From contig NIVC01000365.1 in assembly GCA_002269645.1 (NCBI GenBank), positions 496,001-560,000 of the forward strand: DNA of 64,000 bases, written 5' to 3'. The position numbers and the translations under genes were made by a program. Below the pieces are notes generated by a model. The model did not search any database and was not told where the DNA came from. It saw only the letters and a list, made by a program, of their open reading frames with translations. This DNA is from Macrostomum lignano (Eukaryota). This document shows, in pieces, positions 372-64,000 of this stretch (the stretch's first letter is position 1; each line of letters starts with the position of its first letter).

Positions 372-1040
372 GAGGAAGCGCAGCTGACAGTTCGGTGCTG
401 TTTTGGAGTTGAGTAGCAAGGCGAGATCTCGCTATGGGAATTTGCAGGTTTGAATCAAAGCTTCGATTGGCTTGCGAGAGTTGCTGAGCCAAGTCGGACT
501 GCAGAAGCTCGGGCTGGGCGGCCCTCTGGCAGCTAAATAGCCTGGCGCGGGGGCGCGGGGGCGTCGGCGCCAGATGCCACCAGCTGCTGTCACAAGCACT
601 TCAAAGAGAAAAAACTTTCTCGTTTCGAAAACTTTACCGATCGGATTAAATTTAGGAGCAGAATTAAAATGTGAAAACTGCTGACAGGCAAGTTTCTTGA
701 AGAAATAACAGAGGAGCAACAACTTGAAGCAGATTACAGCAGAAAGCTTGCAACACTTTGGGAGCAAAATCTGAAGTGGGTGCTCAGCTGGACAACCAGA
801 ATATTCTTGTCGAGTGGTCAAAGTCGAACCCGCTTGCTTCCGCAATCCGGAGCTGAAAATCCAGCATTAATCAGCTCTGCCGGGCTCGAGTGGTTTCTGG
901 GACATTCGCTGCCATCAGAAACAATTTTGCTTCTTCAACTGTTGAAGATTAGTGTCCCTAATCCGACCTTGGGAATTGGCGTCACAGAAAAAATAAAATT
1001 TTAGTCCAGGTAAGTTTTTACCTTCATAGCTAGATCTTCA

Positions 1041-1745
1041 GTTTCCACCATCTCTCATTGGATTCTGGCAGTTTCCACCATCTCTCATTGGATTCTGGCA
1101 GTTTCCACCATCTCTAATTGGATTCTGGCAGTTTCCACCATCTCTCATTGGATTCTGGCAGTTTCCACCATCTCTCATTGGATTCTGGCAGTTTCCACCA
1201 TCTCTAATTGGACTCTGGCAGTTATCACCATCTCTAATTGGATTCTGGCAGTTTCCACCATCTCTAATTGGACTCTGGCAGTTTCCACCATCTCTCATTG
1301 GATTCTGGCAGTTTCCACCATCTCTCATTGGATTCTGGCAGTTTCCACCATCTCTAATTGGACTCTGGCAGTTTCACCATCTCTAATTGGATTCTGGCAG
1401 TTTCCACCATCTCTAATTGGACTCTGACAGTTTCCACCATCTCTCATTGGATTCTGGCAGTTTCCACCATCTCTCATTGGATTCTGGCAGTTTCCACCAT
1501 CTCTCATTGGATTCTGGCAGTTTCCACCATCTCTAATTGGACTCTGGCAGTTTCCACCATCTCTCATTGGATTCTGGCAGTTTCCATTGTCCCTCAGTAG
1601 ATTCTGGCAGGTTCCATTGTCCCTCAGTAGATTCTGGTAGTTTCCATTGTCCCTCAGTAAATTCTGGCAGGTTCCGCTGTCTTTAAACAGATTCTGGCAG
1701 TTTCCGCTATCTTCCAACAAATTTCAGCAGTTTCCGCTGCATCAA
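1041..1745. repeat. 30-bp minisatellite (GTTTCCACCATCTCTCATTGGATTCTGGCA) with a degenerating right tail
   Basis: About 18 near-perfect copies to ~1585, then progressively diverged copies. Confidence 0.95.
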
Positions 1746-2012: not shown

Positions 2013-4436
2013 TCAAGGAGTCGTCCCAGACTCCGCCGCATCAGTCTTCCCAGCCTCCGCCGCATCAGTCTTCCCAGACTCCGCCGCATCAGTCTTCCCA
2101 GACTCCGCCGCATCAGTCTTCCCAGCCTCCGCCGCATCAGTCTTGCCAGCCTCCGCCGCATCAGTCTTGCCAGCCTCCGCCGCATCAGTCTTCCCAGCCT
2201 CCGCCGCATCAGTCTTGCCAGCCTCCGCCGCATCAGTCTTCCCAGCCTCCGCCGCATCAGTCTTCCCAGACTCTGCCGCATCAGTCGTCCCAGCCTCCGT
2301 GCCCGCGGAGTGCGCGACCACCTCGCTGAGGTTGTACTTGCGGTAGCGGCGAAAGTTGCGCAGCAGGCTGAGGCACGTGACCCGCTGCAGCACGTTGACA
2401 TCGATGACAACGCTGGCGCGGTCGTGGTCAACTGACCAGTCGGGGCTGACAGATTTCACAGCGGTGAAGACCCGGTTGATGACATCCTGACGCTCCAGCT
2501 TGTCGAAGTTGCGCGCCTTGAAGTGTACCGTGAAAGTCGGCTTAGCGGCTGTTGGCCAGAGGGTGGGCGGAGGCGCATCTTATTCGGCTGCGTGGATACA
2601 GAGGACAAGGTGTACTTTAACGTGCGTAACCAATATTTGGATGCCGTCAACCGCGAGCTTCTGAGATTCTCCCACATGAAATTCCCCCATTTTTTAGTTT
2701 TTTTTTTCACGAGAATCGCGATGGGAGAATCTCGGTGTGAGAATCTCTGTGGGAGAATCTCGGTATGAGAATCTCAGTGTGAGAATCTCGGTGGGAGAAT
2801 CTCAGTGTGAGAATCTCGGTGGTAGAATCTGTGGGAGAATCTCAGTGTGAGAATCTCGGTGTGAGAATCTCGGTGTGAGAATCTCTGTGGGAGAATCTCA
2901 GTGGGAGGATCTCTGTGGAGAATCTCGGGGGAGAATCTCAGTGGGAGGATCTCAGTGGGAGGATCTCTGTGGAGAATCTCGGTGTGAGAATCTCAGTGGG
3001 AGGATCTCTGTGGAGAATCTCGGTGGGAGAATCTCAGTGTGAGAATCTCGGTGGGAGAATCTCGGTGTGAGAATCTCTGTGGGAGAATCTCAGTGGGAGG
3101 ATCTCAGTGGGAGGATCTCTGTGGAGAATCTCGGTGGGAGAATCTCAGTGTGAGAATCTCGGTGGGAGAATCTCGGTGGGAGAATCTCTGTGGGAGAATC
3201 TCAGTGGGAGGATCTCTGTGGAGAATCTCGGTGGGAGAATCTCAGTGGGAGGATCTCGGTGGGAGAATCTCGGTGTGAGAATCTCAGTGGGAGGATCTCT
3301 GTGGAGAATCTCGGTGGGAGAATCTCTGTCGGAGAATCTCTGTGGGAGAATCTCAGTGGGAGAATCTCAGTGTGAGAATCTCGGTGGGAGAATCTCGGTG
3401 TGAGAATCTCAGTGGATGAATCTCTGTGGGAAAATCTCTGTGGATGAATCTCGGTGGGAGAATCTCAGTAGGAGAATCTGGGTGGGAGAAGTTCCTGGGG
3501 GAAATCTCGTGCTCGTGACTACCAAAAAAGCGGGCCAGCTTACCTGTGACTCGATCAGCAGCCACGAAGGCGGTCCACAGCGACTCGAAGGCCTCGCCGA
3601 TGTCCTGCAGGCCGGAGGCGCAGGTGGCCTCCACCGGCAGCAGCCGCAGGATATGGCGGCCGCCGACGCCGCGACTGCCGTCGCCTCGGGCGGCCGCCGC
3701 CACAGCCGCTTCAAAGACAGCGTCGGTGACATCGAAGAGCCACGGCAGGCGCGAGTCCGGCAGCGAGACACCGACGAATACGCAGTTCGGCACCTGCGCG
3801 AATTAGCCGGCGGCGTGAGGTCAGCGATATGTATCGAAAACTATCATGAGCAGGCGGTGGGAGTTAGGGGTGGAAGGTCGCGGCCTGGGACGGTTTGCAG
3901 GGGGGGGGGTGGAGCTGTGTGCACTGCCACAAGCTGACCAGAGGCAGGGAGGGGAAGAGCAGTCATGCCCAAGTCCGCTGACTCCAGATTTCTAGGCTCG
4001 GCGTTGACTATTAGAAAGTCCGCGGCAGGAGGCAGAATTGCCTCAGCGCCAGCAGTGAGTCTCACTCGGCGTCAACACTCGCCTTAGTCGGCAGGTGCTC
4101 GCACGGCTGCACAGCGGCCGCCCGGAGGCCCAGCCCGCCGCCGCGAGCCCGCTCCCGCTCCAGGCACTGCTGGATGTCATCCTCAGCGTTGTCGCCATCA
4201 TCAGCATCTTCCTCGGCGCCTTCGTTGTCTTCAGCTGGATCGTCAGGCAGGAAAGTGTCCAGCAGGTCGAGGGCCTCGCCGACGCACTCGCGCTCCCGCT
4301 TGTTGCAGGTGACCAGCAGGCCGCGCCAGCCGGCGGTCAGCAGCTGCTGGCGGCCGCCCCGCGGCCTCTTGGCGGCTAGAGCGGCCTGCCGGCGGTAGGC
4401 GGCCTTCCGCTTGCGCTTGTCCAGCTGGCGGCCCGA
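2013..4436 (-). CDS. THUMPD1: THUMP domain-containing protein 1 (tRNA acetylation adaptor); start-codon exon not located
   Basis: Exons 4436-4083, 3793-3544 and 2548-2013 are phase-compatible (GC donor at 4082-4081, GTAAG donor at 3543). Motifs KRKRKAAY..GLLVTCNKRERECVGEA, ILRLLPVEATC, TFTVHFKARN and RKYNLSEVV match THUMPD1/Tan1. Confidence 0.85.
2030..2295 (-). repeat. 24-bp coding minisatellite giving ~11 x TDAAE(A/S)GK at the THUMPD1 C-terminus
   Basis: In frame between RKYNLSEVV and the stop at 2013, with no intervening donor seen. Confidence 0.8.
2725..3500. repeat. 14-bp minisatellite (GAGAATCTCGGTGG family) in a THUMPD1 intron
   Basis: About 50 variant copies between exons. Confidence 0.95.
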
Positions 4437-32385: not shown

Positions 32386-33913
32386 TCAGGCGCGGAGTCC
32401 AGGCAGGCAGCAGGCGATGGCCAGAGCGACGACCACCTGGCGAAGGTCGATCGCCGGCCTGGTGCCGCTGTTGCAATAGCTGCGGTCCCGGCAGCAGCTG
32501 TAGCAGGTCTGCCCGGCGTTATCGCAGAGATCGCGGGCGGTCGACTGCGGCTGGCGGGCGCACGTGGTGGTGTCCATGCAGCCCTGAGATTGCATAGTTT
32601 GGCGAATGAGATTGAGACATATAATGGTGCTGCTGTTGGAGTGACCAGGTAGGTGAGGAAGTGCTTGAAGGGATTGTATATAGATGGAGGAGTGATCAGG
32701 TACTGTATGTAGGCGGAGGAGTGATCAGGTGGAGGAGTGATCAGGTGGAGGAGTGATCAGGTGGAGGAGTGATCAGGTGGAGGAGTGATCAGGTGGAGGA
32801 GTGATCAGGTGGAAGAGTGATCAGGTGGAGGAGTGATCAGGTGGAGGAGTGATCAGGTGGAGGAGTGATCAGGTTGAGGAGTGATCAGGTGGAGGAGTGA
32901 TCAGGTGGAGGAGTGATCAGGTGGAGGAGTGATCAGGTGGAGGAGTGATCAGGTGGAGGAGTGATCAGGTGGAGAAGTGATCAGGTATTGTATACAGGTG
33001 GAGGAGTTATCAGGTACTGTAGGTGATGGAGAGATCAGGTACTGCATGTAGGTGGAGTGATCAAGTGAAGCAAGAAGCAGTCGGGGATGCGAGTTGATTT
33101 CACAAAATTTGATCGCATCCTCACCATGGAATATTTCTCAACCACCCCTGTCATTGAGCCGGCTGTCTCTGCCTTGTAGCAGGACTCGCTGCCGGAGCAG
33201 GTCTCAGTGCGCGAAAGGCAGACGCTGAGGTCGCGGGAGTTGCTGCACTTGTAGCAAGTCAGGCCGTCAGCAGTCTGCCCATCTGGAGGCATACATATTC
33301 AGCGAGGAGAGCGCGAGATATGCATGTGCAGGCCGGCAAACAGTCCCAGACCTCCGCTCACTCTCCACTGCTGTTCTTGAAGCAGACAGGGGTAGAAATG
33401 CTTCTGGGGGCTCGGCCGGAGAGAGGTTGAAAAGTAGGAAACGAGAAACATGGCTGGAGGGGATACCTGGCTGAGCAGAGGCTGGGGTTTGGTCGCATTG
33501 TCACGTGACAGAGGATGGCCCGTTGTATGAAGGTGGGCGATTCCTGAATAATTAATTCGCCTGCTATAAAACCGCAGCTGTGTTTGCACTGCTCTACAGG
33601 CTTGAGCAGTTGTTTTGAAACTTAGCTTGCCGCAATTCAGCTGCTCAGCCTCATCAGCCCATCAGAATTTCAGAGAGGCTGATGATGAGGCGGTGTGAAG
33701 TTTGATGGAAGAGAGAAGCCACGTCTAGAATAGCAGGCACTGTTTCACAGCGAGCATCATGAAAACGAGTCCTCATCCAGGTGAATTAAAGCGGCAACAT
33801 GCAGCTCTGTATATTGGCCATGGGGTTCCGTACTCACGGCAGAGAAGGGCCATCGATGCCAGAATGAGCAGCGGCAGCAGCGCACAGCCAGACGCCTCAT
33901 CGACCACTCTCAT
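32386..33913 (-). CDS. GPI-anchored Ly6/uPAR (three-finger) protein, quiver/sleepless-like
   Basis: Exons 33913-33838 (signal peptide MRVVDEASGCALLPLLILASMALLC, donor GTGAGT), 33282-33125 and 32583-32386 are in phase. LTCYKC start, CCRDRSYCN end, 12 Cys, hydrophobic C-terminal GPI signal. Confidence 0.85.
32685..33065. repeat. 16-bp minisatellite (GGAGGAGTGATCAGGT) in the Ly6 intron
   Basis: About 18 core copies with degenerate flanks. Confidence 0.95.
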
Positions 33914-34558
33914 CCGGAGCCTCTTCAGCCGCAGCGCTATTAGGCAGCTAAAACTTGAGACCGAATTCCAAAATATGAGTCGTTGGCTTATGCAGGTTTC
34001 AGTGCGCTCAGAGCATTTGTGAGCAGCGCGCCGGTGCAGGGGTCTATAAAGTCTCTCCTCTCCAAAACTGCCATTTGCTTTCTCATTGGCTCAGTGCATT
34101 AAAGCTCCCTGTAAACACTTCTCCCTGTGAGCACAGCTCAGTCCAACCATCGTAGCGCGTACATGAGCTGTGCATGAGCAGTACAATAGACTTTTTGAGT
34201 GCTGTTTGCTTAGCGAATTGTATATCCTCGGGCTGCCTGCTTGCCGCTTAATAAAGGAGGCAACTCGCAATTTCACAGCAGAGATAACGGGCCCTAATCA
34301 TACTGCAGGTAGCAGGCATTGCTGACAGAAAGAGATCTGCAGGAAGCATGAGCCACTTCCAGTGCTGGGCAGAAATTAACTTAGTCGAGAAAAAGAATAC
34401 ACTGTACGAAAACGAAAATTGATGCGAAATAACCGATTCCAAGTTTATTGTTAAAGTTATGAGCAGTGCTCACCTTAAAATTTGTTAATATTAATAATGT
34501 AGTCTAAATCTGCAGTAAAAGCACAAGACAATGGAAAACTGACACCATAAATCATAGA

Positions 34559-35871
34559 TCAGCAGATACCGCAGGAACCACCTTTGCTCCACTCCTTGCC
34601 GCCTCCACCGCTGCTGCTTCCGTGACTGCTCCACTCCTTGCCGCCTCCACCGCTGCTGCTTCCGTGATTGCTCCACTCCTTGCCGCCTCCACTGCTGCTG
34701 CTTCCGTGACTGCTCCACTCCTTGCCGCCTCCACTGCTGCTGTTTCCGTGATTGCTCCACTCCTTGCCGCCTCCACTGCTGCTGTTTCCGTGATTGCTCC
34801 ACTCCTTGCCGCCTCCACCGCTGCTGCTTCCGTGACGGCTCCACTCCTTGCCGCCTCCACCGCTGCTGCTTCCGTGACTGCTCCACTCCTTGCCGCCTCC
34901 ACCGCTGCTGCTTCCGTGACTGCTCCACTCCTTGCCGCCTCCACCGCTGCTGCTTCCGTGACTGCTCCACTCCTTGCCGCCTCCACCGCTGCTGCTTCCG
35001 TGACTGCTCCACTCCTTGCCGCCTCCACCGCTGCTGCTTCCGTGACTGCTCCACTCCTTGCCGCCTCCACCGCTGCTGCTTCCGTGACTGCTCCACTCCT
35101 TGCCGCCTCCACTGCTGCTGTTTCCGTGATTGCTCCACTCCTTGCCGCCTCCACCGCTGCTGCTTCCGTGACGGCTCCACTCCTTGCCGCCTCCACCGCT
35201 GCTGCTTCCGTGACTGCTCCACTCCTTGCCGCCTCCACCGCTGCTGCTTCCGTGACTGCTCCACTCCTTGCCGCCTCCACCGCTACTGCTTCCGTGACGG
35301 CTCCACTCCTTGCCGCCTCCACCGCTGCTGCTTCCGTGATTGCTCCACTCCTTGCCGCCTCCACCGCTGCTGCTTCCGTGACTGCTCCACTCCTTGCCGC
35401 CTCCACCGCTGCTGCTTCCGTGACTGCTCCACTCCTTGCCGCCTCCACCGCTGCTGCTTCCGTGACTGCTCCACTCCTTGCCGCCTCCACCGCTGCTGCT
35501 TCCGTGATTGCTCCACTCCTTGCCGCCTCCACTGCTGCTGCTTCCGTGACTGCTCCACTCCTTTCCTCCTCCACTGCTGCTGTTTCCGTGACGCTCCACT
35601 CCTTGCCGCCTCCACTGCTGCTGCTTCCGTGACTGCTCCACTCCTTTCCTCCTCCACCGCTGCTGCTTCCGTGACTGCTCCACTCCTTGCCGCCTCCACC
35701 GCTGCTGCTTCCGTGACTGCTCCACTCCTTGCCGCCTCCACCGCTGCTGCTTCCGTGACTGCTCCATTCTTTTCCTTCACTGCTGGCTGGATATCCGAAG
35801 GCTTGATCCGTTCCGCAGGCTACAGCAGTCAGACAAAGGACTAGAAGATACAGCCTTAGTCTCTTCGCCAT
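34559..35871 (-). CDS. Candidate secreted Gly/Ser/His/Trp repeat protein: signal peptide + ~28 x EWS(S/N/R)HG(S/N)SS(G/S)GGGK, with a 1-nt frameshift at ~35592
   Basis: ATG at 35871 gives MAKRLRLYLLVLCLTAVACG, in frame with the 42-bp repeat. Several repeat variants are synonymous in this frame (GGC GGC AAG/GGA GGA AAG, AAA GAA/AAG GAG, AGC/AGT). Stop at 34559 if the frameshift is corrected; AATAAA at 34449-34444. Confidence 0.65.
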
Positions 35872-37125
35872 TACTAAGCAGTTCTTTTGAATCCTAGCTA
35901 GAAGCAAATAGAAAAAGATGCAGCTCTAACCATGCCAATACTCTACTTGGTCGTCAGGGTTAAATAGTCTGCTTAGCTCGCCGGCACGTTGACCACACTG
36001 GTTTACTGCACGTGACAGCTTTCTAAAAGCTTTTCCGAAACCCAATTCCACTTCGGCCAAAGGTTTGCAAATTAACTTTAAAAGAAGCGTCTCTGCTGGA
36101 ATGGAATTTCCCTCAATGGAAAACCTGCTTTGTTCACGTCTGGGAGTCTTGTTTGACCGGTTTAGCGGAAAATACGCCCGTAAGCAGCAGCTAACGTGCT
36201 CGTTATACTTCAAACTTTTTTCACCTGCCGTTCCAGATTTGTACTCGTATTTTGGCGAGTTGCTTGCTCTGCTTCAATCTTCTTAGTAATTTGTCACGCT
36301 TTACCGGACGCTTTAGGACCCTTTGCCGGAAATGCTTCCGGAGACCGGCAATTAGACAGATTTCTCGACAAACAATGTCTATGGCGAACCCCCCATTCAG
36401 CGCTATGCAAAAGACAAATCTTAGCAAAATCCGTTTAGAAAGCACATCTGTAGTTTGAGCGTTGCAGTTCTCGAATAATCTTGCTTTTTCAAACTTTCAA
36501 CTAACTTTTGAGTTCACCTCAATCGAAACGATTCACACACTTGCTTGATTTGGACTTCGGAAGTGCGGCTAGGCAGTGAGATGTTGGGAATTTAGTGCTA
36601 AAAAACTGAAAACTTGCAGTCTCGCCAATTGCAGTCTCGCCAACTTGCAGTCTCGCGACATTGTCACGATTTAAGCGTCTTTCAGTTTTCATGTACCTGT
36701 TCAATGTTCATGCATGGTTTGCCCAAGGACGACTCTTTAAGTCATCATTGGGTTTGCCTGCAGCTGTTTCATCAACGCAAACTGCTTATTTGTATGCCAG
36801 ACTTCTACAACTTTGAGCTCGCCTTTCAAAAACAGAGATACCACTTCTCGAGGCAGTGTTCCCAAAGTCGAAATAAGTAGACGGCTTGCAGCTCTGGTTG
36901 CACGCTTCAACCTGTGTGGATTGTATTCTAGTCCCCACGTATTCAAGCTTTAACAGAGATAAACAAAAAGCTATGTTTAAAGAAGACTTGACTACTTCCA
37001 CAGAGACATCCAGTGAAATTTGGTAATAGACGCGTCTGACTTCATGTATCAAGTAGGAGATACGTGACCATTTTTCTAAATTTTTTAGCTGTCTATAGGA
37101 TCAGACGGCATGAATTCAAATTATA

Positions 37126-40644: not shown

Positions 40645-43600
40645 TGTTGTATTTATTTATATTGATTTACTGACTCAGCACAGACAGAGATTAGGGGTGG
40701 GTGACTGAACAACACACAGAGAGAGAGAGAGTAAATAACCAACTCCAAACCCCCCCCCGACACTGGGGTGGCAAAAGTGCACTAGAACTAAAAAATAAAC
40801 AAATAATAATAACTAACTGAGAGACCTAGCCAAGCCATACACATAACTAACTATCTGACATCTCCCCCCTAAAGTTCGAAACATCCCCAAGCAAAGTTCG
40901 TTCGAAGTCAGAGTCAGTTCAAATTCAGGATCAAAGTTGCAGGCGTTCAGGTGGCTGCCTCCGACGCTGCGGATAGCGCCTCGCCGGACTGCTCGGCCGG
41001 TCAGCGGCGGCGGTGGCCGCGTCATCCTGCGGCGCGTCATTGCCGCCGTCGCCTTCGCTTTGCTCGGTGGGCAGCGAATGCGGTTCATCGGAGACAGCGG
41101 CCGGCGTCACCGGGTCGGCCTCTGGCAGCGAGCTCGTCAGCAGCTGGTCCGTGTGCCGCCGATGGAGAGCGCCGCCGACCTCAACGTCGCAGTTGCGGGA
41201 TCCAGCGGACACGACGCTGCCCTCCGCCCAGCGAGTGCCGCCGCCAGCCCTAGCGTTGGAGCTGAAGTCGCGCAGTAGAACTCGGTCGCCGACTTGAAAC
41301 TCGCGCGCATGCGGCTGCTGCTCGACCTGCCGCTCTTGGTGTTGCTGCATGCTGCTCGTCAGCGATGGCATCAGCAGGTCCAGCCGACTGCGCAGTCTGC
41401 GGCCGATGAGCAGCTGGCTGGGAGCTTCGCCGGTGATCGAGTGCGGCGTGTTGCGGTAGGACAGCAGCATCCGCTGCAGTGCCGCCGTCGAGTGCCCGCT
41501 CTTGAGCAGATGTCGCTTGAGCACCTGAACGAATCTCTCCGCTTGGCCGTTCGTTGCCGGATGGAACGGCGCCGAGAAAACATGCCGAATGCCATTGCGC
41601 CTTGTGAACTCGCCGAACTCCGCGGAGGTGAACTGCGTGCCGTTGTCGGAGACCAACACCCGGGGAATGCCCAGTCTGGCGAAGACCTCGCGGAGTCGCT
41701 CGATGGTGGCAGCAGACGTAACGCTGTGCACTTGATGAACCTCCGGCCACTTGCTGAAGGCATCCATGATGACCAGGTACGTGCGACCGTTAACGGGGCC
41801 GGCGAAGTCCAGGTGCAGCCTCGCCCAAGGTTCAGCAGGAAACGGCCACGGTTGCACCGGCGCCTTGGGCGGGTCTGCCTGGTTCAGCATGCAGGTCCGG
41901 CACGACTTGACGGTCATCGCAAGCTGCTCGTCCAGGCCGGGCCACCAGACGTAGCTGCGGGCTAGCGCTCGCATGCGGTTGATGCCGGGATGCGCCTGGT
42001 GCAGCTCGTCCAGCACGCCTTGTCGCAGAACCGCGGGCACCACGACGCGGGCGCCCCACAGCACGCAGCCCTGTTCAACGCTCAGCTCGTCCTGGCGCCT
42101 CGAGAAGTCGATGAGATCGGCGCCAGCCATTGGCGCGCCAGTCTGCAGACAGCGAAGCACCCGGCCGAGGATGGCATCCGAGCGAGTGCTGCGCGCGACC
42201 GCCTGAGCCGTTATGGCGGACCCGGTCTCCTCATCCAGTAGCAGGGCGTTGACGGCCGGCTCTTCCTCAAACTGCCTCGGCAATGGCAGCCGGGACAGAG
42301 AGTCGCAGTTGGCGTGCTTGCTGGTGGGCCGGAACTCCAGCGAGTAGTCGTAACCGGCCAAACGGATCGCCCAGCGCTGCATGCGAGCCGCCGCGTGCTC
42401 TGGAATCGCCTTGTTTTCACCGAGAAGTCCTAGGAGCGGTTTGTGGTCGGTCACGATGACGAACTTGCGGCCTTGGAGGAACTGATTGAAGCGCTGGAGG
42501 CCGAACATGATCGCTAGCGCCTCCTTGTCTAACTGCGAGTAGCCCTTTTGAGCCGTCGTCAGGCTGCGACTGGCGAAGGCAATGGCTCGGTCCTGGCCGT
42601 CCACTCGGTGCGTCAGCACCACGCCGAGACCATAGGGGCTGGCGTCGCACTCTAGCCGCAGCGGCAGCTTGGCGTCATAATGCATCAGCACCGGAGACTC
42701 GAGCAGAAGACGCTTGGACTTCTCGAAGGCTATCTGCTGAGGCTCCCCCCACGTCCAGCGCGCGTTCTTAGTCAGCAGCTGATTCAGGGGAGCGACCACC
42801 GTGGACAGATGAGGCAGAAATTTGCCGTAGTGCGTCAACATGCCCAAATAAGCTCGGAGTTGACTGCAGTCTGCGGGTGGCGGGGCGTCCTGCACCGCCT
42901 TCACCTTCTCTGTCAGCGGCCGCAGTCCGTTGCTGTCGATCCGGTGGCCCAGATACTCGACCGAATCGCGGAACAACTCGCACTTGTCTTTGTTCAGTCG
43001 TAGGCCCGCCTCCCGTAGGCGCTGAAGGACCTTGATAAGATTCTCGCGATTATGCTGCAGCGTCTTGCCCGTCACCAGGATGTCGTCCACAAAGACTTGC
43101 ACAGACTCTAGGTCACCGAGCAGCGAGTCTAGCGTGCGCTGGAATACCGCACTGGCGCAGTTGATGCCGAACGGCATGCGGTTCAGCTGGTACAGGCCTC
43201 GCTGCGTGTTGATAGTCAAGAAGGGCTTGCTGTCCTCAGACAATGGCAGCTGCAGGAAGGCGTTTGACATGTCCAGCTTGGACCATTTGCAGCCGCCACC
43301 CAGCTTTGCAAATAAGTCCTCAATGCGCGGCAGTGGGTACAGCTCCGGCCTGGACTCTGCGTTGTAGGTGAGCTTGTAGTCGCCGCAGATCCTCACCGAA
43401 CCGTCCTTCTTGACAACAGGCACAATTGGCGCAGCCCAGTCGGAATGTTTGACTGGCGTGATGATGCCGTCAGTCTCCATCCGTCGAAGTTCCTGATCGA
43501 CGCGCTCCCGGAGTGCATAGGGGACCGGTCTGGCCTTGAAAAAGCGCGGCTTTGCCTCAGTCGGCATGTGCAGTTTCACCTCGCCGTGCCGATAGGTGCC

Positions 43601-44100
43601 AAGGCCGCCTTGGAAGACCTCGGGGAACTGCGCGAGCAGATCAGCTGCTTGTCCGGTCACTGAGTTGACCTGACCAAGGATCGTCGGCCAGTCCAATCTC
43701 AGCTGCGTCAGCCAGTCGCGACCCAATAGTGCGACATCGCCTTGCTCGACCACAAGCAGCGTCAACCGCCGATCTTGGCCATTATGCTGAACCGCGACCT
43801 CTGCCTGTCCGATGGGTCGAAAGCTCTCGCCCGTGTAGGTGCGCAGCACCGTGGATGTCGGCGACAGATGGAGACCCGGCAGGACATCCTCTTGGAGACT
43901 CTTCGGGATGACGGTGAGGGCGGAGCCGGTATCCACCTCGAAGCGACATGGCTTGCCTTGGAGCAACAGCTCGACCGCCAGACCCTTGCTCGATCCGCTC
44001 TGCCTAATGCTGAAGAGGGGCTCCTGCAGCTCAGCCGGCTCTGGGTCCAGCTTGTGCAGCTTTGAAGACCTGCACACCTTGCGGATGTGCCCGACTTTGC
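40645..44100 (-). mobile_element. Gypsy (Metaviridae, probably Mag-like) LTR retrotransposon A: 5'-truncated, intact pol, 3' LTR at 40860-40645
   Basis: Uninterrupted 1048-aa ORF (44077-40931): protease VDTGS, RT FVDD, RNase H CDASPYGLG, integrase HHCC and D,D35E. PPT AGGGGGGAGA at 40870-40861; LTR TGT...ACA with AATAAA. The gag CCHC knuckle is cut at ..GKVGHIRKVC. Confidence 0.95.
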
Positions 44101-45224
44101 CTTTTCAGCAAAATGGAGAAACAGGAGTATCGAGCTCTCAATAAATTTTTTACCTTTAAAGGATTAAAGCCACCAGCGATCGAAGCAGAGATCAAGTCTG
44201 TGTACCCCGCAACTTGCCTATCTCTACGCACAATTGAGAGACACCATACTGAATTTAAGCAAGGCAGGGTGACCCTCGAAGATGACCCCCGGAGTGGGCG
44301 CCCTGCTACCAGCGCCAACCAGGAGAAAGTTGATGCAGTTGCCAAGCTCCTGGATGAAGATCGGCGAATTTGAGTTGCCAGCATTGCACACACTGTTGGC
44401 ATCTCAATTGGCTTAGTTGAGGAAATCCTGCACCAAATCCTTGGATACAACAAGGTCAATGCCCGTTGAGTGCCCCGAATGCTTTTGCGGGACCACAAGC
44501 TGAATCGGGTGAACTCTAGCCGCTTCATGCTTGACCTGTACAACGCGGACCCAAATGGATTCGAGTGACGAATCATAACAGGGGATGAGTACTGGCTACA
44601 CCACTATGACCCTGAGTCCAAGCGTGACTCCATGGAGTGGCGGCGCCCAGGAGAAGATGCACCTCGCAAGTTCAAGCAAGTGAAGTTGGCTGACAAGGTC
44701 TTGGGCTGCTTCTTCTGGGATTGTCAGGGGATGCTGCTTGCTGAGTACCTGCCAGTTGGGCACACTGTGACAGGTGTGCGGTACGCTGAACAGCTGGGCC
44801 GACTTCGTCAAGCAGTTGTCAGGAAGAGGCGAGGCAAGTTGAGTGCTCGCCCCCTGCTGCTTCATGACAATGCCCCTGCTCACACAGCCCAAGTTGCAGT
44901 GAATGCTGCCACCACTGCAGGATTCGAAATTCTGCCCCATCCTGCCTATTCACCAGACCTGGCCCCATCGGATTTCTACTTGTTTCGCCAGCAGAAGCCA
45001 CTCCGAGGGCGCCATTTTGAGTCCAATGAGGAAGTCATCGCCCTCGTGAACCAGTGGCTGGAGGACCAGATGGCAACCTTCTACACCAGCGGCATCCAAG
45101 AGCTGTGTGACCATTGGCAGAAGTGTATTGATCGCCAAGGAGATTATGTTGAAAAATAATGTAGCCTTGTCCCAAAATTTTTTGTTTGAATATACAAACG
45201 ACAGAACTTTTTGAACCCCCCTCG
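44101..45224 (+). mobile_element. Mariner (D,D34D) element lacking its left TIR; transposase pseudogene at 44113-45159
   Basis: 349-codon frame with 3 in-frame TGA (44371, 44467, 44566). Motifs TGDEYW, HDNAPAH and YSPDLAPSDFYLF. Right TIR GAACTTTTTGAACCCCCCTCG followed by TA. Confidence 0.93.
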
Positions 45225-48200
45225 TACGTCCCTAGCCAAGACATCAGAATCTGGCTTACCGCATTCGACCAGCGATGTGAGAACGAAGGCATCGAAGAAG
45301 AGAATCGAAAGCAGGAATTGCTCACTAATTTAGATCTAAGCACTGCGTTTGCAGCAGTCCAACGCCTCAACCTCCCAGCTAATCTCCCCTATGAGGAATT
45401 CAAGGAAAGATTGATAGAGAGATTCGGAAAGGTAGGAAGCTCCGCCGAATTCCACAGAGTTCCGAAACCGATGCCAAGGTCGAAACAAATCTATAGACAG
45501 TTTCACTGATGCCCTAATTGAATTAGCCTCCCGCGCATTCTTAAATATGGATGCTAAGCAAAGAGAAGAGGAACTGGTTGAGCAGTTCATTAAAGGTGTG
45601 AGAACCCCTCCCGACACCCGTGAAAAGCTAATTTTTGCCCAACCTGCTAGTCTCCAAGCCGCCCATAGAATGTTGCACAGAATTGAAGCTGCTTACCAGA
45701 TGTCCCACAAAGGTGGAATTAGAGTGACAAAGGATGAGAAAGAGGAACACAAGGTCAGAACTGATCGGTTGATCATTGACCAGCAGACTAAGATTGACCG
45801 CCAAGAAAGGCTTATTCAGAACTTGCAGAAGCAACTGGCCGAAACAGCGCAATGCGTCCCGCTGTCTCAGGTGTTTCCCCAGCAACAGTATAGGCAGCCA
45901 AACCCCCAGCAACAGTACAGGCAGCCAAACCCCCAGCAACAGTACAGGCAGCCAAACCCCCAGCAACAGTACAGACAGCCACCCCCTCAGCAGTACAGGC
46001 AGTTAAACCCTCAGCTGTACAGACAGCCACCCTAGCAGCAGTACAGGCCGCAACCTCAGCAGCAGTACAGGCCCCAGCTGATGAACCAGCCGCCAAGACG
46101 TGAGCCCCCAAGAAGGAATGAGCGTCAGCCCCCTAACCCAAGATATGAGCCGCTGAAGTTCCGCAACCCCCGTGACTCCCAGAAGTCGGGAAACTGAGAA
46201 GCCAGGGTCGAATTAAGAGGCCACGCCCCTCAGGCCAAAATTTTGCTTACTCTCCGGCCTCCCCATCATTTTGAAATGCCCCCCAACCAAAATACTGGCA
46301 ACCTCCCCAGTACAGTTTCCGTTATCCCCGCAAAACCTCCCATGTACAGCCAATGCCTATAAATAACGCAATATCTGTCTCCCCCAATAATTTTTAATTT
46401 CTTACCTTTGATGATGCCGACAATGCTATGCCAAATGCCCCCCATGGCCCCCATGTGTACAATTCCCCTCATGCGACCACCTCTCATGTAACCAATGCGA
46501 CCAAAGCTCATGTACATCATGCGTCCGCACCCCATGTACCCACTGCGCTTGCACCCCATGTATCCCATGCGATTGAAGTCAATAATGCTCTATCCAGTGC
46601 TAAAAACTGCTCAAGGAAGCGACAAAAGCCAAAACCCAATTCCCCATCCCGAATTGACCTGACTAAACTAGAAGGTTATGAAGCTGTAATTGTCGGCGAT
46701 ATCCAGAAAGAATCAATTGATTTCTTGCTAGACATAGGCGCCAGAAATAATTTCCTGAGCCACTCAACCTGGTCTAAGCTATTCTGTTCTGATCAAATCC
46801 GAGACACTAACAAAAGAATTAGTACATTTGACGGTACCCCAGTCCAATTAGAAGGAGAAGTATCTGCCCAAGTGAAGTTTGGCAATATCCAAATCGAAGT
46901 TGATTTCCTCCTATGCCGACATGATTGTGACAATATTCTAGGTATGGAATTTTTCCTATCCCAATGCAAAAGCATTCAGCTAGCCAAAGGAATGCTAGTT
47001 TTTAACGAAGGTACCTGTATACCCATGCAGTATACCCGCCTATCCGTGAAAGTTTGCCAAGTTTATACTCAAGAAAGAGTAATCATCCCAGCTAATAGTG
47101 CCCTCCGAATACCTGTGAAGTTAGCCAAGAATTGCGAATCGAATTATGGCACTCCCATGACCATTGAAGCTATTGGCGATACTATCCAAACCCGTGATTT
47201 CTCATTAGAAATGGTTCCAACCCTAGTAACTATGAAAGAAGGCAAAGGAATTGTCAAAATTATTAACCGCCACCCAGTAGATGTGAATCTAACTAAAACT
47301 TCCTTAATTGGCCTAGCCAGACCCATAAAAGCCAAAGACTTGACCTATTGGCAAACCCAACCCCCCAGCTCCCAACGCCCTGCAAAAGTCAACCAGACTC
47401 AATGTACAGATGATTCATGGATTAATGAGGTGAGCCTTGGCCCTAAATTGTCAGATGAACAGCAAAAAGCAGTCATCGACTTAATGAAAGAAAACTATGA
47501 AGCTTTTTGCCAGAATGAATTAGACATGGGCCTGACACACTTAGTAACCCACGAAATTTCTATCAAAGACCCCACTCCCATTAGAATCCCAGCTAGACGC
47601 ATCCCCCCACACTTGCAAAAGCAAGTTGACGCCCAATCAGATGATATGTTAGCCAAAAATCTAATTAGACCCTGCTACTCAACCTATTCCACTCTCGTAG
47701 TAATTGTCCCCAAGAAAGATGGTTCTATCAGAATCGTTAGCGATTTCCAAGTGCTCAACTCAAGAGTTAATTACTACCCCTACCCCTCCCTAATATCCAA
47801 GAGACCTTCTCCCACCTAACTGGTAGCCAATACTTTAGCAGTTTAGATTTAAATTCAGGATACTGGCAAGTCCCCATCAAAGAAGAAGATAAGCATCGAA
47901 CCGCCTTCTCCATCCTAACTAGAGGCCAATTTGAATACCAAGTGATGGCCCAAGGACTTTCCAATGCCCCCGGAACCTTCCAACGTCTAATGAATTTAGT
48001 ACTATTAGGAATTCAACACAAGTTTGCCATGTCCTATATAGACGACATAATAGCCTACTCCTAAACTAGGCTAGGACTCGAGAAGTGTTTAAGCGATTAA
48101 TTGCCACAGGTCTAAAGTTGAGACCCAAAAAGTGCAATCTTTTCCATCACGAGTTACAGTACTTAGGACACGGGATTGGCCGACAAGGCATTCAAACAGA

Positions 48201-51200
48201 CAAGATGAAGATTGAAGCAATCCAAACTTGGCCCCGTCCCAAAGACGTAAAAGAACTATGCAGTTTTCTTGGCCTATGCAATTATTATTGCCGATTTGTA
48301 AAGAATTATGCCGAAGTGGCTTACCCCCTATTCCAATTGACTCGAAAAGGAGTTGAGAATTTCCAATCTAAGTGGAGCAAAGTGCATGACGAAGCCTTTG
48401 AGTCCCTAAAGCAATGAATGATGTCTACTGAAGTATTAGCATACCCCGAATATGTCAATGATGAGAATGTGAAGATGGTGCTTGAAACAGATGCCAGTGA
48501 CGACAGGATTGGCACATGCCTTGGCCAAATCCAGAGTGATGGCATAGAGCGACCAATAGCCTATTTTAGTAGAGCAATGAAGGAATCAGAGAAGCGTTAC
48601 CCCATTACTCGGAAAGAATTGTTAGCCCTTGTCGACGCTATAAGGCATTTCAGATTTTATCTGATCGGCAAGAAATTCTTAGCCCGAACTGATCATAAAG
48701 CAATAATTTGGCTCATGAGACAGACTGAAGCAACCGGAATCCTAGGTAGATAGATAGAGCATCTGAACGAATTCAGGTTCGACATTGAACACAGAAGCGG
48801 CGCAAAGCATTCCAATGCCGACGGATTGTCGCGAAGACTAGCTGAGATAGCTGAAGCCCCTGAAATATCCCCTGAAGCAGCCCCTGAACTTGCTGAAATA
48901 GCATCTGAAGTTTTTGAAGTCCCTGACGCAGCCCCTGAGCCTGCTGAAGCGATCCCTGAAGCCCCTGAAGCATTTGAAGAAAATTTTGAGAAAATTGAGC
49001 CAATCCCTGAGAAAGTTAAGAAGTTGACCCCTGTTCCCCTGAGAGATGAGAGTGCTCCCGTTGAAACTAAGGACAACCCCATGTCCCAGTCACCTAAAGC
49101 CCTGACAGAAAGCGAGACCCAGCCTGAATATCCCGAATCTAGGATACAGCTGAATGTCTCAGGCAGAGATGAAAGTAAAGAAGAGACAGGAAAGTGTGAG
49201 AAACTGTTAACTGATTACCTTCCCAGCCCTCTGAAGAAAGAACAGATTCGAGAAGCCCAAGCTGCTGACCCCATCATTAAAGCTCTATTAGAAGCCAACA
49301 ATCAGAAACTGAGCCAACTCCCCAAATCACCGGACATGCCCGAGAAAATTAGTAAACACTTCGAAGCCATGAAAATTGATAATGATCTGTTAACAATTGC
49401 CGAAGACAGAAAAAACAAAGTAGTTTTGCCCCCATCCCTAGACAAAGCAGTCTTTACTAACTTACACTGCAGCCCCCTCACAGGACATCTAGGAAGAGAT
49501 AAACAGTCCAAAGAATCAGAGAAAGATTTTGGCGACCCGGACTAAGCACTTCAGTCGAGCAATTAATTGCTGATTGCATCCCCTGCCTTGAGAGCAAGAA
49601 AGGACATTTTGTCCAGGCCCCAGTCCAGTCATTCCCTATTGGTGAAGCATTTAGCCGCCTGCATATAGACATTATCGGCCCAATCTCAAAAGAAAGCAAA
49701 TGAGGTCACAAATACATTCTGACAGTTGTAGATAGTACCACTCGATATCCATTCGCTTTTCCCATCAGAAATCAAAAATCAGATACAGTCATCAAGATAC
49801 TACTCGAGCGAATAGTAGCAGAATATGGATAGCCCATCTGGATCCACATAGACAATGGAAAAATCTTCGCTAGTAAACAATTTAAAGCTTTCTGCGAACT
49901 TTATAATATTTGCCACACCTTTACTACCCCATACCATGCCCAATCTAACGGACTAGTAGAAAGATTTAATAAGCAAGTAAAGTCAATCATCACCTGCCTG
50001 ATCAATAAGGATCACGGTGATTAGGACTTACTGATTCCCGCAGCCCTAGTAGCCGTTCGCACCAGCCCCAATGTAACAACAGGATTTTCCCCGCACTTTC
50101 TACTATTTGGAAGAGAAGCTACTCTACCCTTAGATACTCAAATTAGAAGCGCAGCCGAACACGCAGATTATCCCGCCTACATTACTAAGCATGCTGAAGA
50201 TTAGAGGAAGCCCATAAGATAGTCAAGAAAAAATTAGAAAAAGTAGTACAGAAAAGACAGACCGCTGCTGAAACTAATAAACTTCCCCCTAGAGTCCCCA
50301 TAGGTTGTTTAGTTTTAATTAATAACCCCCAGCTAGATAGCAAAGAATCCCACAAGTTTCATCGAAAGAAGAGATCCGCCTTCAGAGTTCTAGCCCAATT
50401 ATCAGAAGTAGTCTTCAAAGTCCAGAAAGAAGAAGAAGGAGAATTAGTAGGAAAAGAAATGCTTGTGCATCGAGACAATTTAGCTCCAATTCCAAATTCA
50501 ACTACAGAACAAATCATTAAGGAAGGCCAGCGAGATGCCCCTGATTCCGCCCCTAATTCCGCCCCTGTTCTAATTCCCACTCCTGCTCCAATTCCCGCCT
50601 CTACTAAACCTAAGAGACAACCTGTAATTAAGGAAGGCCAACCCCGCCGAAATTCCCAAAAACTAATCTTGCCCGAACCAGTTGAATCTGAAGAAGAATC
50701 CGATGAGGAAGACATGAATTGGAGATGCCAAATTAGAGACGCAGAGAATGAAGAGGTAGAAGAAGACAATGAAGCTCAGCTAGAAGAATGGAATGAAGCC
50801 CAGACAGAGGAAGAAAATGAAATGACCGATGAGTCAGAGAGTGAGGCCCCGAACGAAGAAATCCCTGAGCCCCAACCTCCCTCTCCTGCCCTGCGAGATC
50901 CCAAACCCCCGCGCCGTCACCCTTACAATTTAAGGCCCCCACCCCAAAATAAACAGCGTTGCAACTGCCATCTAGACAGACTACTATTAGCACTAAACCT
51001 CTTGCGCAACTTAGAATTTTAGCCCGTCTACACCTTCCTACCCCTCCCTCGCCGTCCCCATTTGCCCAACAGACTCCAAATTTTAGACAAAGAAAGCCCT
51101 CGACTAGACCCCTGCTATGCACAAATAACCCTTTAAAATATCGATCGACAGAGAAATTAGAGCCCAAAGAACATAGAAAATGAGGTGGGTTACAAAAACA

Positions 51201-57448: not shown

Positions 57449-64000
<6,552 letters not shown>

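Follow-up and report, generated by a model that had tools for sequence, protein, structure and literature searches.

The 64,000-nucleotide stretch analysed here, referred to below as the window, is NIVC01000365.1:496001-560000 of the Macrostomum lignano assembly Mlig_3_7 (GCA_002269645.1). On its minus strand it holds what is probably a small unannotated gene, predicted to encode a secretion signal followed by 22-29 copies, depending on the genomic copy, of a 14-residue Gly/Ser-rich unit. Tandem Repeats Finder places the array at 34585-35766, with a period of 42, 28.2 copies, 96% matches, 0% indels and a score of 2182. Read from the minus-strand ATG at 35871, the translation begins with MAKRLRLYLLVLCLTAVACG-TDQAFGYPASSEGK and enters a series of EWSSHGSSSGGGGK units, 28 of which are full (35769..34595), while a truncated 29th unit diverges into EWSKGGSCGIC and is followed by TGA at 34561-34559. 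Apart from a deletion in unit 5, the ATG, signal peptide, array, tail and stop succeed each other in a single frame, called here the EWS frame. A preliminary description of this stretch had delimited a secreted repeat protein at 34559-35871, which is exactly the span from the stop to the start of the minus-strand gene; its estimate of about 28 tandem 42-bp units agrees with the 28 full units counted, as does its statement that the signal peptide runs in frame into the array. The features of the gene, in the 5' to 3' direction of its strand, are as follows.

35960..35966, minus strand: TATA-like box TATTTAA, with a putative promoter function, about 95 nt upstream of the ATG and identical in sequence in the three genomic copies described below
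35812..35871, minus strand: start codon (ATG 35871-35869, context GTAATGG) and predicted signal peptide MAKRLRLYLLVLCLTAVACG
35770..35811, minus strand: non-repeat spacer TDQAFGYPASSEGK, with the appearance of a degenerate edge unit, 100% identical in the three copies
34595..35769, minus strand: 28 tandem 42-bp units encoding EWSSHGSSSGGGGK and variants of it (S4 to N or R, S7 to N, G10 to S)
35561..35601, minus strand: unit 5, of 41 bp, in which one C of a CC pair is missing beside 35593 and the frame shifts to AVTEAAAVEAARSG
34562..34594, minus strand: C-terminal tail EWSKGGSCGIC with two cysteines, identical in the three copies
34559..34561, minus strand: stop codon TGA of the EWS frame
34443..34448, minus strand: candidate polyadenylation signal AATAAA, about 110 nt past the stop, conserved in the three copies

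Upstream of the ATG at 35871 there is no in-frame ATG, and an 11-codon upstream open reading frame (ORF; ATG 35933), which may sit at or before the transcription start, terminates ahead of the main ATG. No intron is needed, and the whole forms a compact unit of about 1.5 kb. Candidate cleavage sites of the signal peptide, derived from the -3/-1 rule and not from SignalP output, are AVA/CG and ACG/TD (slashes mark the cut here and in the splice sites below). A potential spliced-leader trans-splice acceptor at 35901 (ttgcttctag/C) was not adopted, because it ends in TAG, unlike the [T/C]TNCAG motif of the species, and because taxon-restricted genes are mostly not trans-spliced (PMC8629364). We also observed a candidate splice donor of consensus quality, AAG/GTGAGC, at 34467-34476 (minus strand) in the 3' untranslated region (UTR), 85 nt past the stop and some 25 nt ahead of the AATAAA; all three copies keep it, it fits the GT[G/A]AG motif of the species, and it might serve e.g. 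a read-through into Ly6.

Further copies of the gene were found by synteny: the conceptual protein of the neighbouring Ly6 gene led to its annotated paralogues P0102 and P0104, these to their contigs, and the contigs to two loci, L003 (NIVC01001187.1:109357-131334, reversed) and L004 (NIVC01001187.1:1-15432), which lie in opposite orientation about 94 kb apart. Both loci show the gene order repeat gene, Ly6, VWA_3-domain gene, i.e. the same block as in the window; the zinc-finger gene upstream is found at L003 as well, and L004 begins at the contig end. At L003 the repeat gene has 22 units in an uninterrupted ORF of 353 aa and at L004 29 units in an uninterrupted ORF of 451 aa, with the ATG and the CGIC stop identical to those of the window copy, so that the copy numbers among three near-identical gene copies are 22, 28 and 29. 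The double block on NIVC01001187.1 reflects an inverted segmental duplication or else redundant haplotypes that were joined in the assembly, and 180 Mb of the assembly is duplicated at an identity of at least 95% (PMC5730564). The three copies resemble each other in a mosaic fashion, the window copy being nearer to L004 upstream and nearer to L003 downstream. At about position 1841 of L004, 112 nt upstream of the ATG (column 290 of alignment A1), one G of CCGGCG is missing compared to the two other copies; this loss lies in unique sequence, which shows that the copies can differ by single-base indels, real or erroneous, outside the repeat as well.

In the window copy the literal translation downstream of unit 5 becomes AVTEAAAVEAARSG and stays open to 34552. 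The orthologous unit, namely unit 6 of L003 and units 4 and 10 of L004, is intact (GAGTGGAGCCGTCAC..., EWSRHGNSSSGGGK), and since it reads EWSRHGNSSSGGGK in both other loci, the frameshift is private to the window copy. The missing base, which the preliminary description had put at about 35592, can be placed beside 35593/35592 in unit 5, and the notion of a single-base deletion that hides the ORF is strengthened by the two other genomic copies, which carry the gene without the frameshift. The lost base had been assumed to be an A; in the other copies it is the C of a CC pair (codon CGT, Arg).

The predicted product consists of a 20-residue signal peptide, a 14-residue spacer, 22-29 x EWSSHGSSSGGGGK and a short tail ending in CGIC. 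The mature protein would have a mass of 32-41 kDa, an isoelectric point of about 9, about 33% Gly and about 33% Ser, with one Glu, Trp, His and Lys per 14 residues. The repeat amounts to 28 of the approximately 30 unit-lengths of the mature chain, which is the architecture of a secreted tandem-repeat structural protein. An AlphaFold2 model calculated without an alignment has a mean predicted local distance difference test score (pLDDT) of 39, with low confidence throughout and no secondary structure, and weakly favors disorder.

It is likely that the array belongs to a real protein-coding gene. The two strands of the window contain 560 ATG-led open frames with 40 codons or more, and none except this one combines a hydrophobic core with a mean Kyte-Doolittle value of at least 2.9 and an n-region charge of at least +2 (here +3), and the 42-bp array is the only one of the 18 tandem arrays of the window that has a signal-peptide-like N-terminus in front of it. 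Eight unit positions vary in the window array, four of them silent third positions in the EWS frame (3, 24, 36 and 39) and four residue-changing. When the 79 units of the three copies are pooled, 12 distinct substitution events can be distinguished, of which 5 are silent in the EWS frame (18% expected, P=0.05) and 3 in each of the other two sense frames. The silent substitutions, regarded by the preliminary description as an argument for coding, thus do show an excess in the EWS frame, but the excess is only borderline in the pooled set (5/12, P=0.05). Unit length is kept with precision: 78 of the 79 units have exactly 42 bp, whereas indel events in the flanks of the three copies number about 5 in 1050 nt, a density at which 4.4 would be expected in a shared array (P=0.07), and the intronic arrays in the same loci have 3-5% indels. 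The non-coding comparison here is a 16-bp array in Ly6 intron 2 (window 32685-33015, L003 10979-11681, L004 4853-5135), with 21, 45 and 18 copies in the window, L003 and L004, respectively, and 3-5% indels. The non-repeat coding sequence (138 nt) shows 0 differences among the three copies versus 6 in the 111 nt past the stop (P=0.007), and the TATA-like box and the AATAAA, conserved in all copies, lie at sensible distances from the ORF.

Searches for relatives were uniformly negative. In the Pfam-A database no family matched at E<=0.01 in an hmmscan of a shortened conceptual protein made up of the signal peptide, 13 units (the frameshift given as X) and the tail. The full protein had no match at E<=1e-3 in 5.8 billion clusters, a search in which the filter of 8000 word-matched candidates was possibly swamped by Gly/Ser words, and the unique N-terminus had no match at E<=1 in the same clusters. 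Among 1.84 billion representatives, phmmer returned 101 matches, all of them unrelated proteins with a 14-residue period and none with an EWS/W-x-x-HG motif, and we rejected them as artefacts of periodicity and composition. An exact look-up of the two ORFs as they stand in the sequence, of 439 and 402 aa, retrieved no record, and an exact 27-mer had no match in metagenome or prokaryotic genome contigs. The motif EWSSHG was not found in a full-text literature search or in the supplements of the M. lignano seminal-fluid screen, and no description of the unit motif EWSSHGSSSGGGGK was found in the literature search. The earlier impression that the protein belongs to no recognizable family therefore stands for Pfam, for the 5.8 billion clusters and, artefacts aside, for the 1.84 billion representatives. 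The clusters that contain the neighbouring Ly6 protein hold NCBI and UniRef/MetaClust entries only; without RNA-derived entries among them, the collection seems to contain no RNA assemblies of the species, and its silence on the repeat protein says little about expression.

The short unique head, the homogeneous Gly/Ser-rich core of variable copy number and the Cys-bearing tail are the grounds on which we read the product as bulk secretory material. Our preferred explanation, to which we assign a probability of roughly 0.55, is that this is a real, single-exon, taxonomically restricted M. lignano coding gene, that its product is a secreted disordered bulk material, and that the frameshift of the window copy is most likely an assembly error. 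Transcription would start at a TATA-type promoter belonging to the gene itself, with polyadenylation about 130 nt past the stop, and a gland or epidermal cell would secrete the protein in bulk as an intrinsically disordered material, e.g. mucus, an adhesive, or an egg or seminal matrix. Trp, His and Lys, which recur at regular intervals, could make weak multivalent contacts between flexible Gly/Ser spacers, contacts that His would render pH-sensitive; the terminal cysteines of the CGIC tail would permit disulfide linking, and the Ser runs, NSS variants and SGGG motifs are potential glycosylation sites. By analogy to known proteins, a secreted structural component of gland or epidermal material is plausible. 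The gene is probably an ordinary orphan repeat gene of a familiar kind, encoding a lineage-restricted secreted tandem-repeat protein.

A number of observations weigh against this explanation. The 110 nt upstream of the ATG are likewise identical in the three copies, so that the identity of the coding sequence may result from recent duplication or gene conversion and not from selection. With Pfam-supported exons of the window as the training set, the codon-usage log-likelihood is -0.85 bits for the unit in the EWS frame versus +3.5 in the VEQSRKQQ frame, and the N-terminal 34 codons score -13 bits, being rich in A/T-ending codons, unlike the neighbour genes, which are rich in G and C at third codon positions. 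The repeat is open in 4 of the 6 frames, which makes an uninterrupted ORF weak evidence by itself, several other arrays of the window with periods that are a multiple of 3 are also free of indels, and simple and tandem repeats make up 15% of the genome (PMC5730564). Relatives are absent from every collection searched, the statistical tests are each borderline, and the material function draws on analogy of composition only. One could thus see in the array a non-coding minisatellite that by chance lies behind an ATG and a hydrophobic stretch and is either untranscribed or not translated into a functional protein. Such a chance arrangement would suit a repeat-rich genome with about 18 large arrays in this window alone, several with a period that is a multiple of 3, and it would agree with a unit open in four frames, with unhelpful codon usage, with an N-terminus atypical for local genes, with a homologue not found in the collections searched, with the frameshift in one copy and with the borderline outcome of all selection-type tests. 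We nevertheless hold it doubtful: a signal peptide of this kind occurs in 1 of 560 open frames, the ATG context, TATA-like box, AATAAA and in-frame Cys tail are placed as in a gene and are conserved in three copies, the exact length is kept by 78 of the 79 units, and the frame that shows the excess of silent changes is the very one that the signal peptide dictates. For the frameshift in the window copy, an uncorrected long-read deletion, i.e. an assembly error, is the probable cause. Mlig_3_7 is a Canu assembly of PacBio reads that was polished by Pilon using short reads, and the error is the likelier cause because short reads have no unique placement in an array of 1.2 kb present at three loci. 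It is tentatively conceivable, and compatible with our preferred explanation, that the window copy is a true pseudogene or null allele next to two functional copies: the DV1 line has extra large chromosomes and much redundancy and should tolerate the loss of one of three copies, and other indel differences of 1-4 bp between the copies occur in unique flanks, where polishing should work. Still, the missing base is a C in a CC pair, within a 1.2-kb array whose units recur at three loci, where polishing by Pilon with short reads is unreliable, and the window copy has no second lesion.

That the array is a part of the downstream Ly6/uPAR gene on the same strand is extremely improbable. According to this alternative, the MAKRL exon and the array would belong to Ly6 either as an alternative first exon or, as the preliminary description had envisaged in its refuting scenario, as an intron of the Ly6 5' UTR; the two genes indeed share a strand, with about 650 bp between the repeat stop and the Ly6 ATG, and splicing from a weak GT at 35777 would keep the phase of Ly6 exon 2. 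Even without the array, however, the Ly6 gene is complete, with three exons that are in phase, the first of which has its own signal peptide and GTGAGT donor, and no spliced continuity of the array with the Ly6 coding exons was found. The three-exon splice model (143 aa) reproduces P0102 and P0104 exactly and has the same length as the 143-aa UniRef entry A0A1I8I6K7. The 5'-partial coding sequences of the transcript-based Ly6 models P0102 and P0104 start at positions that match 34003 and 34015 of the window, 33 nt past a TATA-like TTTATAGA (34050-34043) and about 430 nt downstream of the AATAAA of the repeat gene. Transcript models that begin downstream of that AATAAA, with a TATA-like box and a signal-peptide exon of their own, leave the scenario of a 5'-UTR intron unsupported, and the candidate donor GTGAA mismatches the GT[G/A]AG motif of the species (PMC8629364). 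Another alternative, to be regarded as improbable, concerns the product: cleavage after each Lys and amidation at Gly would turn a polyprotein precursor into 22-29 copies of the 12-residue (p)EWSSHGSSSGGG-amide, with a role as neuropeptide, hormone or pheromone. High-copy precursors of amidated peptides exist in invertebrates, and the signal peptide, the head-to-tail identical units and the Gly-Lys at each unit end, with Gly right before the basic site (GGGGK ends every unit), are features that the repeat protein shares with neuropeptide precursors. Prohormone convertases, on the other hand, normally need a basic residue at P4, P6 or P8 for monobasic processing. Here each unit has a single Lys as its only basic residue, dibasic KR, RR or KK sites are absent, P4 is occupied by Gly, P6 by Ser and P8 by Ser or Asn, acidic spacers are lacking, and the peptide would be two-thirds Gly/Ser. 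Moreover, the copy number is free to vary (22, 28, 29) among near-identical copies, which is typical of bulk repeat proteins, and no related precursor was found in any collection searched. In the molluscan FMRFamide precursors a signal peptide likewise precedes many identical copies that end in Gly followed by a basic residue; these precursors use KR/RR and spacers, whereas the flatworm units have a lone Lys, no spacers, no basic P4/P6/P8 and a Gly/Ser-dominated 'peptide'. As far as sequence can show, the preliminary description is supported in its hidden secreted repeat ORF of no known family, which gains from the two intact copies, whereas its alternative of a multi-copy amidated propeptide fits poorly, and as judged from the unit itself the structural role appears preferable to a weak precursor reading. 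A more daring version is likewise hard to credit: a young gene specific to Macrostomum, possibly born de novo, would have taken shape when a minisatellite following a signal peptide expanded, and processing at the lone Lys residues would yield 22-29 amidated Trp/His dodecapeptides (e.g. a secreted pheromone or reproductive signal). If true, this peptide precursor would be built for an unusual rule of processing, at monobasic Lys sites.

For a disordered secretory material several known systems offer likenesses. Silk fibroin and sericin, the dipteran Sgs glue and marine adhesive/cement proteins share with the predicted protein the signal peptide, short unique ends, a core of near-identical Gly/Ser-rich repeats, terminal cysteines (in the flatworm protein those of the CGIC tail only), variable copy number and lineage restriction; no sequence relationship to them was found, and the flatworm unit lacks Tyr or 3,4-dihydroxyphenylalanine (DOPA), Pro and an Ala block. 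Glycine-loop or sticker-spacer proteins (loricrin and keratin end domains, the His-rich proteins of squid beak and Nereis jaw) carry single aromatic or His residues at regular intervals in Gly/Ser runs. Their spacing and predicted disorder are alike, but those proteins are either intracellular (loricrin) or far richer in His, and no homology was found. Ser-Gly-X-Gly is a glycosaminoglycan-attachment motif, and the S-G-G-G of each unit fits it; the likeness to serglycin-type cores is one of motif only, as no acidic cluster lies beside the site here. Gel-forming mucins, in which vWD/C8/TIL and cystine-knot (CK) domains flank repeats rich in Pro, Thr and Ser, differ, since the flatworm repeats are Ser/Gly-rich without Pro or Thr and hmmscan detected no vWD or CK domain. 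Among platyhelminths, Cs1 of Clonorchis sinensis is alike in its signal peptide, tandem repeats and gland-type secretion (PMC6091968), and database searches revealed no sequence similarity to parasitic flatworm antigens of this type. In M. lignano itself, Mlig-ap1 and Mlig-ap2 are secreted, have large low-complexity or tandem-repeat regions and are poorly recovered in short-read assemblies (PMC8621496). They are, however, 5,407 and 14,794 aa long, versus 353-451 aa with 14-aa units here, and carry vWD, C8, TIL, EGF, lectin and TSP-1 domains, GRK-rich regions or repeats of 221-255 aa (PMC8621496), whereas hmmscan found none of their domains, and no Pfam domain at all, in the repeat protein.

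GenBank annotates only the zinc-finger gene and the Ly6 gene in the 20 kb around the repeat, leaving the repeat gene unannotated. We rejected this absence as an argument against expression: the annotation deliberately dropped transcripts that overlap repeat annotations (PMC5730564), and its silence is therefore uninformative on expression. Short-read transcriptomes, too, fail on the repeat proteins of Macrostomum (PMC8621496). If the gene is expressed, it would be a concrete case of a gene lost from the public annotation of a model organism for technical reasons, namely filtering by repeat overlap, an array that cannot be assembled from short reads, and a single-base deletion in one copy. M. 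lignano is used for studies of adhesion, seminal fluid proteins and regeneration, and its gland secretions often consist of lineage-specific repeat proteins; a Gly/Ser/Trp/His repeat protein of 32-41 kDa with three gene copies would be a reasonable candidate component of such a secretion, and EWSSHGSSSGGGGK a simple diagnostic tryptic peptide (monoisotopic 1318.55 Da) for existing proteomic data. The main practical interest lies in this likely annotation gap in a model flatworm; no long-standing question is opened by it.

The neighbouring Ly6 gene consists of the following exons.

33913-33838, minus strand: Ly6 exon 1, with its own signal peptide and a GTGAGT donor, phase 1
33282-33125, minus strand: Ly6 exon 2
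32583-32386, minus strand: Ly6 exon 3, with a glycosylphosphatidylinositol (GPI)-type tail

The GenBank model of the window Ly6 (P0103, PAA84645.1, 86 aa) looks mis-built, as it uses an out-of-frame ATG (33900) and skips exon 2. The other genes recognized by Pfam in the window are a calcyclin-binding-protein-like gene, CCDC93, the VWA_3-domain gene and the C2H2 zinc-finger ORF; the mobile elements comprise a Ty3/gypsy-type pol ORF and a mariner-type transposase remnant, which lie in a cluster of mobile-element remnants at 40931-49545.

40931-44077, minus strand: Ty3/gypsy-type pol ORF, 1047 aa (protease, reverse transcriptase, RNase H, integrase)
44632-45159, plus strand: mariner-type transposase fragment
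46428-47819, plus strand: second retroelement protease ORF

Two other arrays of the window, at 2019-2299 (plus strand) and 1039-1712 (minus strand), have periods of 24 and 30 bp, respectively, and 0% indels. The ORF of the 30-bp array has only sub-threshold Pfam matches to Pro-rich and zinc-finger-primase families. The 24-bp array, whose ORF matches no Pfam family, is in frame with an ATG-led hydrophobic N-terminus, MYFLIFRYIMVLQLNQAILS..., which has an n-region without positive charge and is followed by SSQPPPHQ repeats. Finally, a (TCTA)n microsatellite of 93.5 copies occupies positions 63214-63587 of the window.

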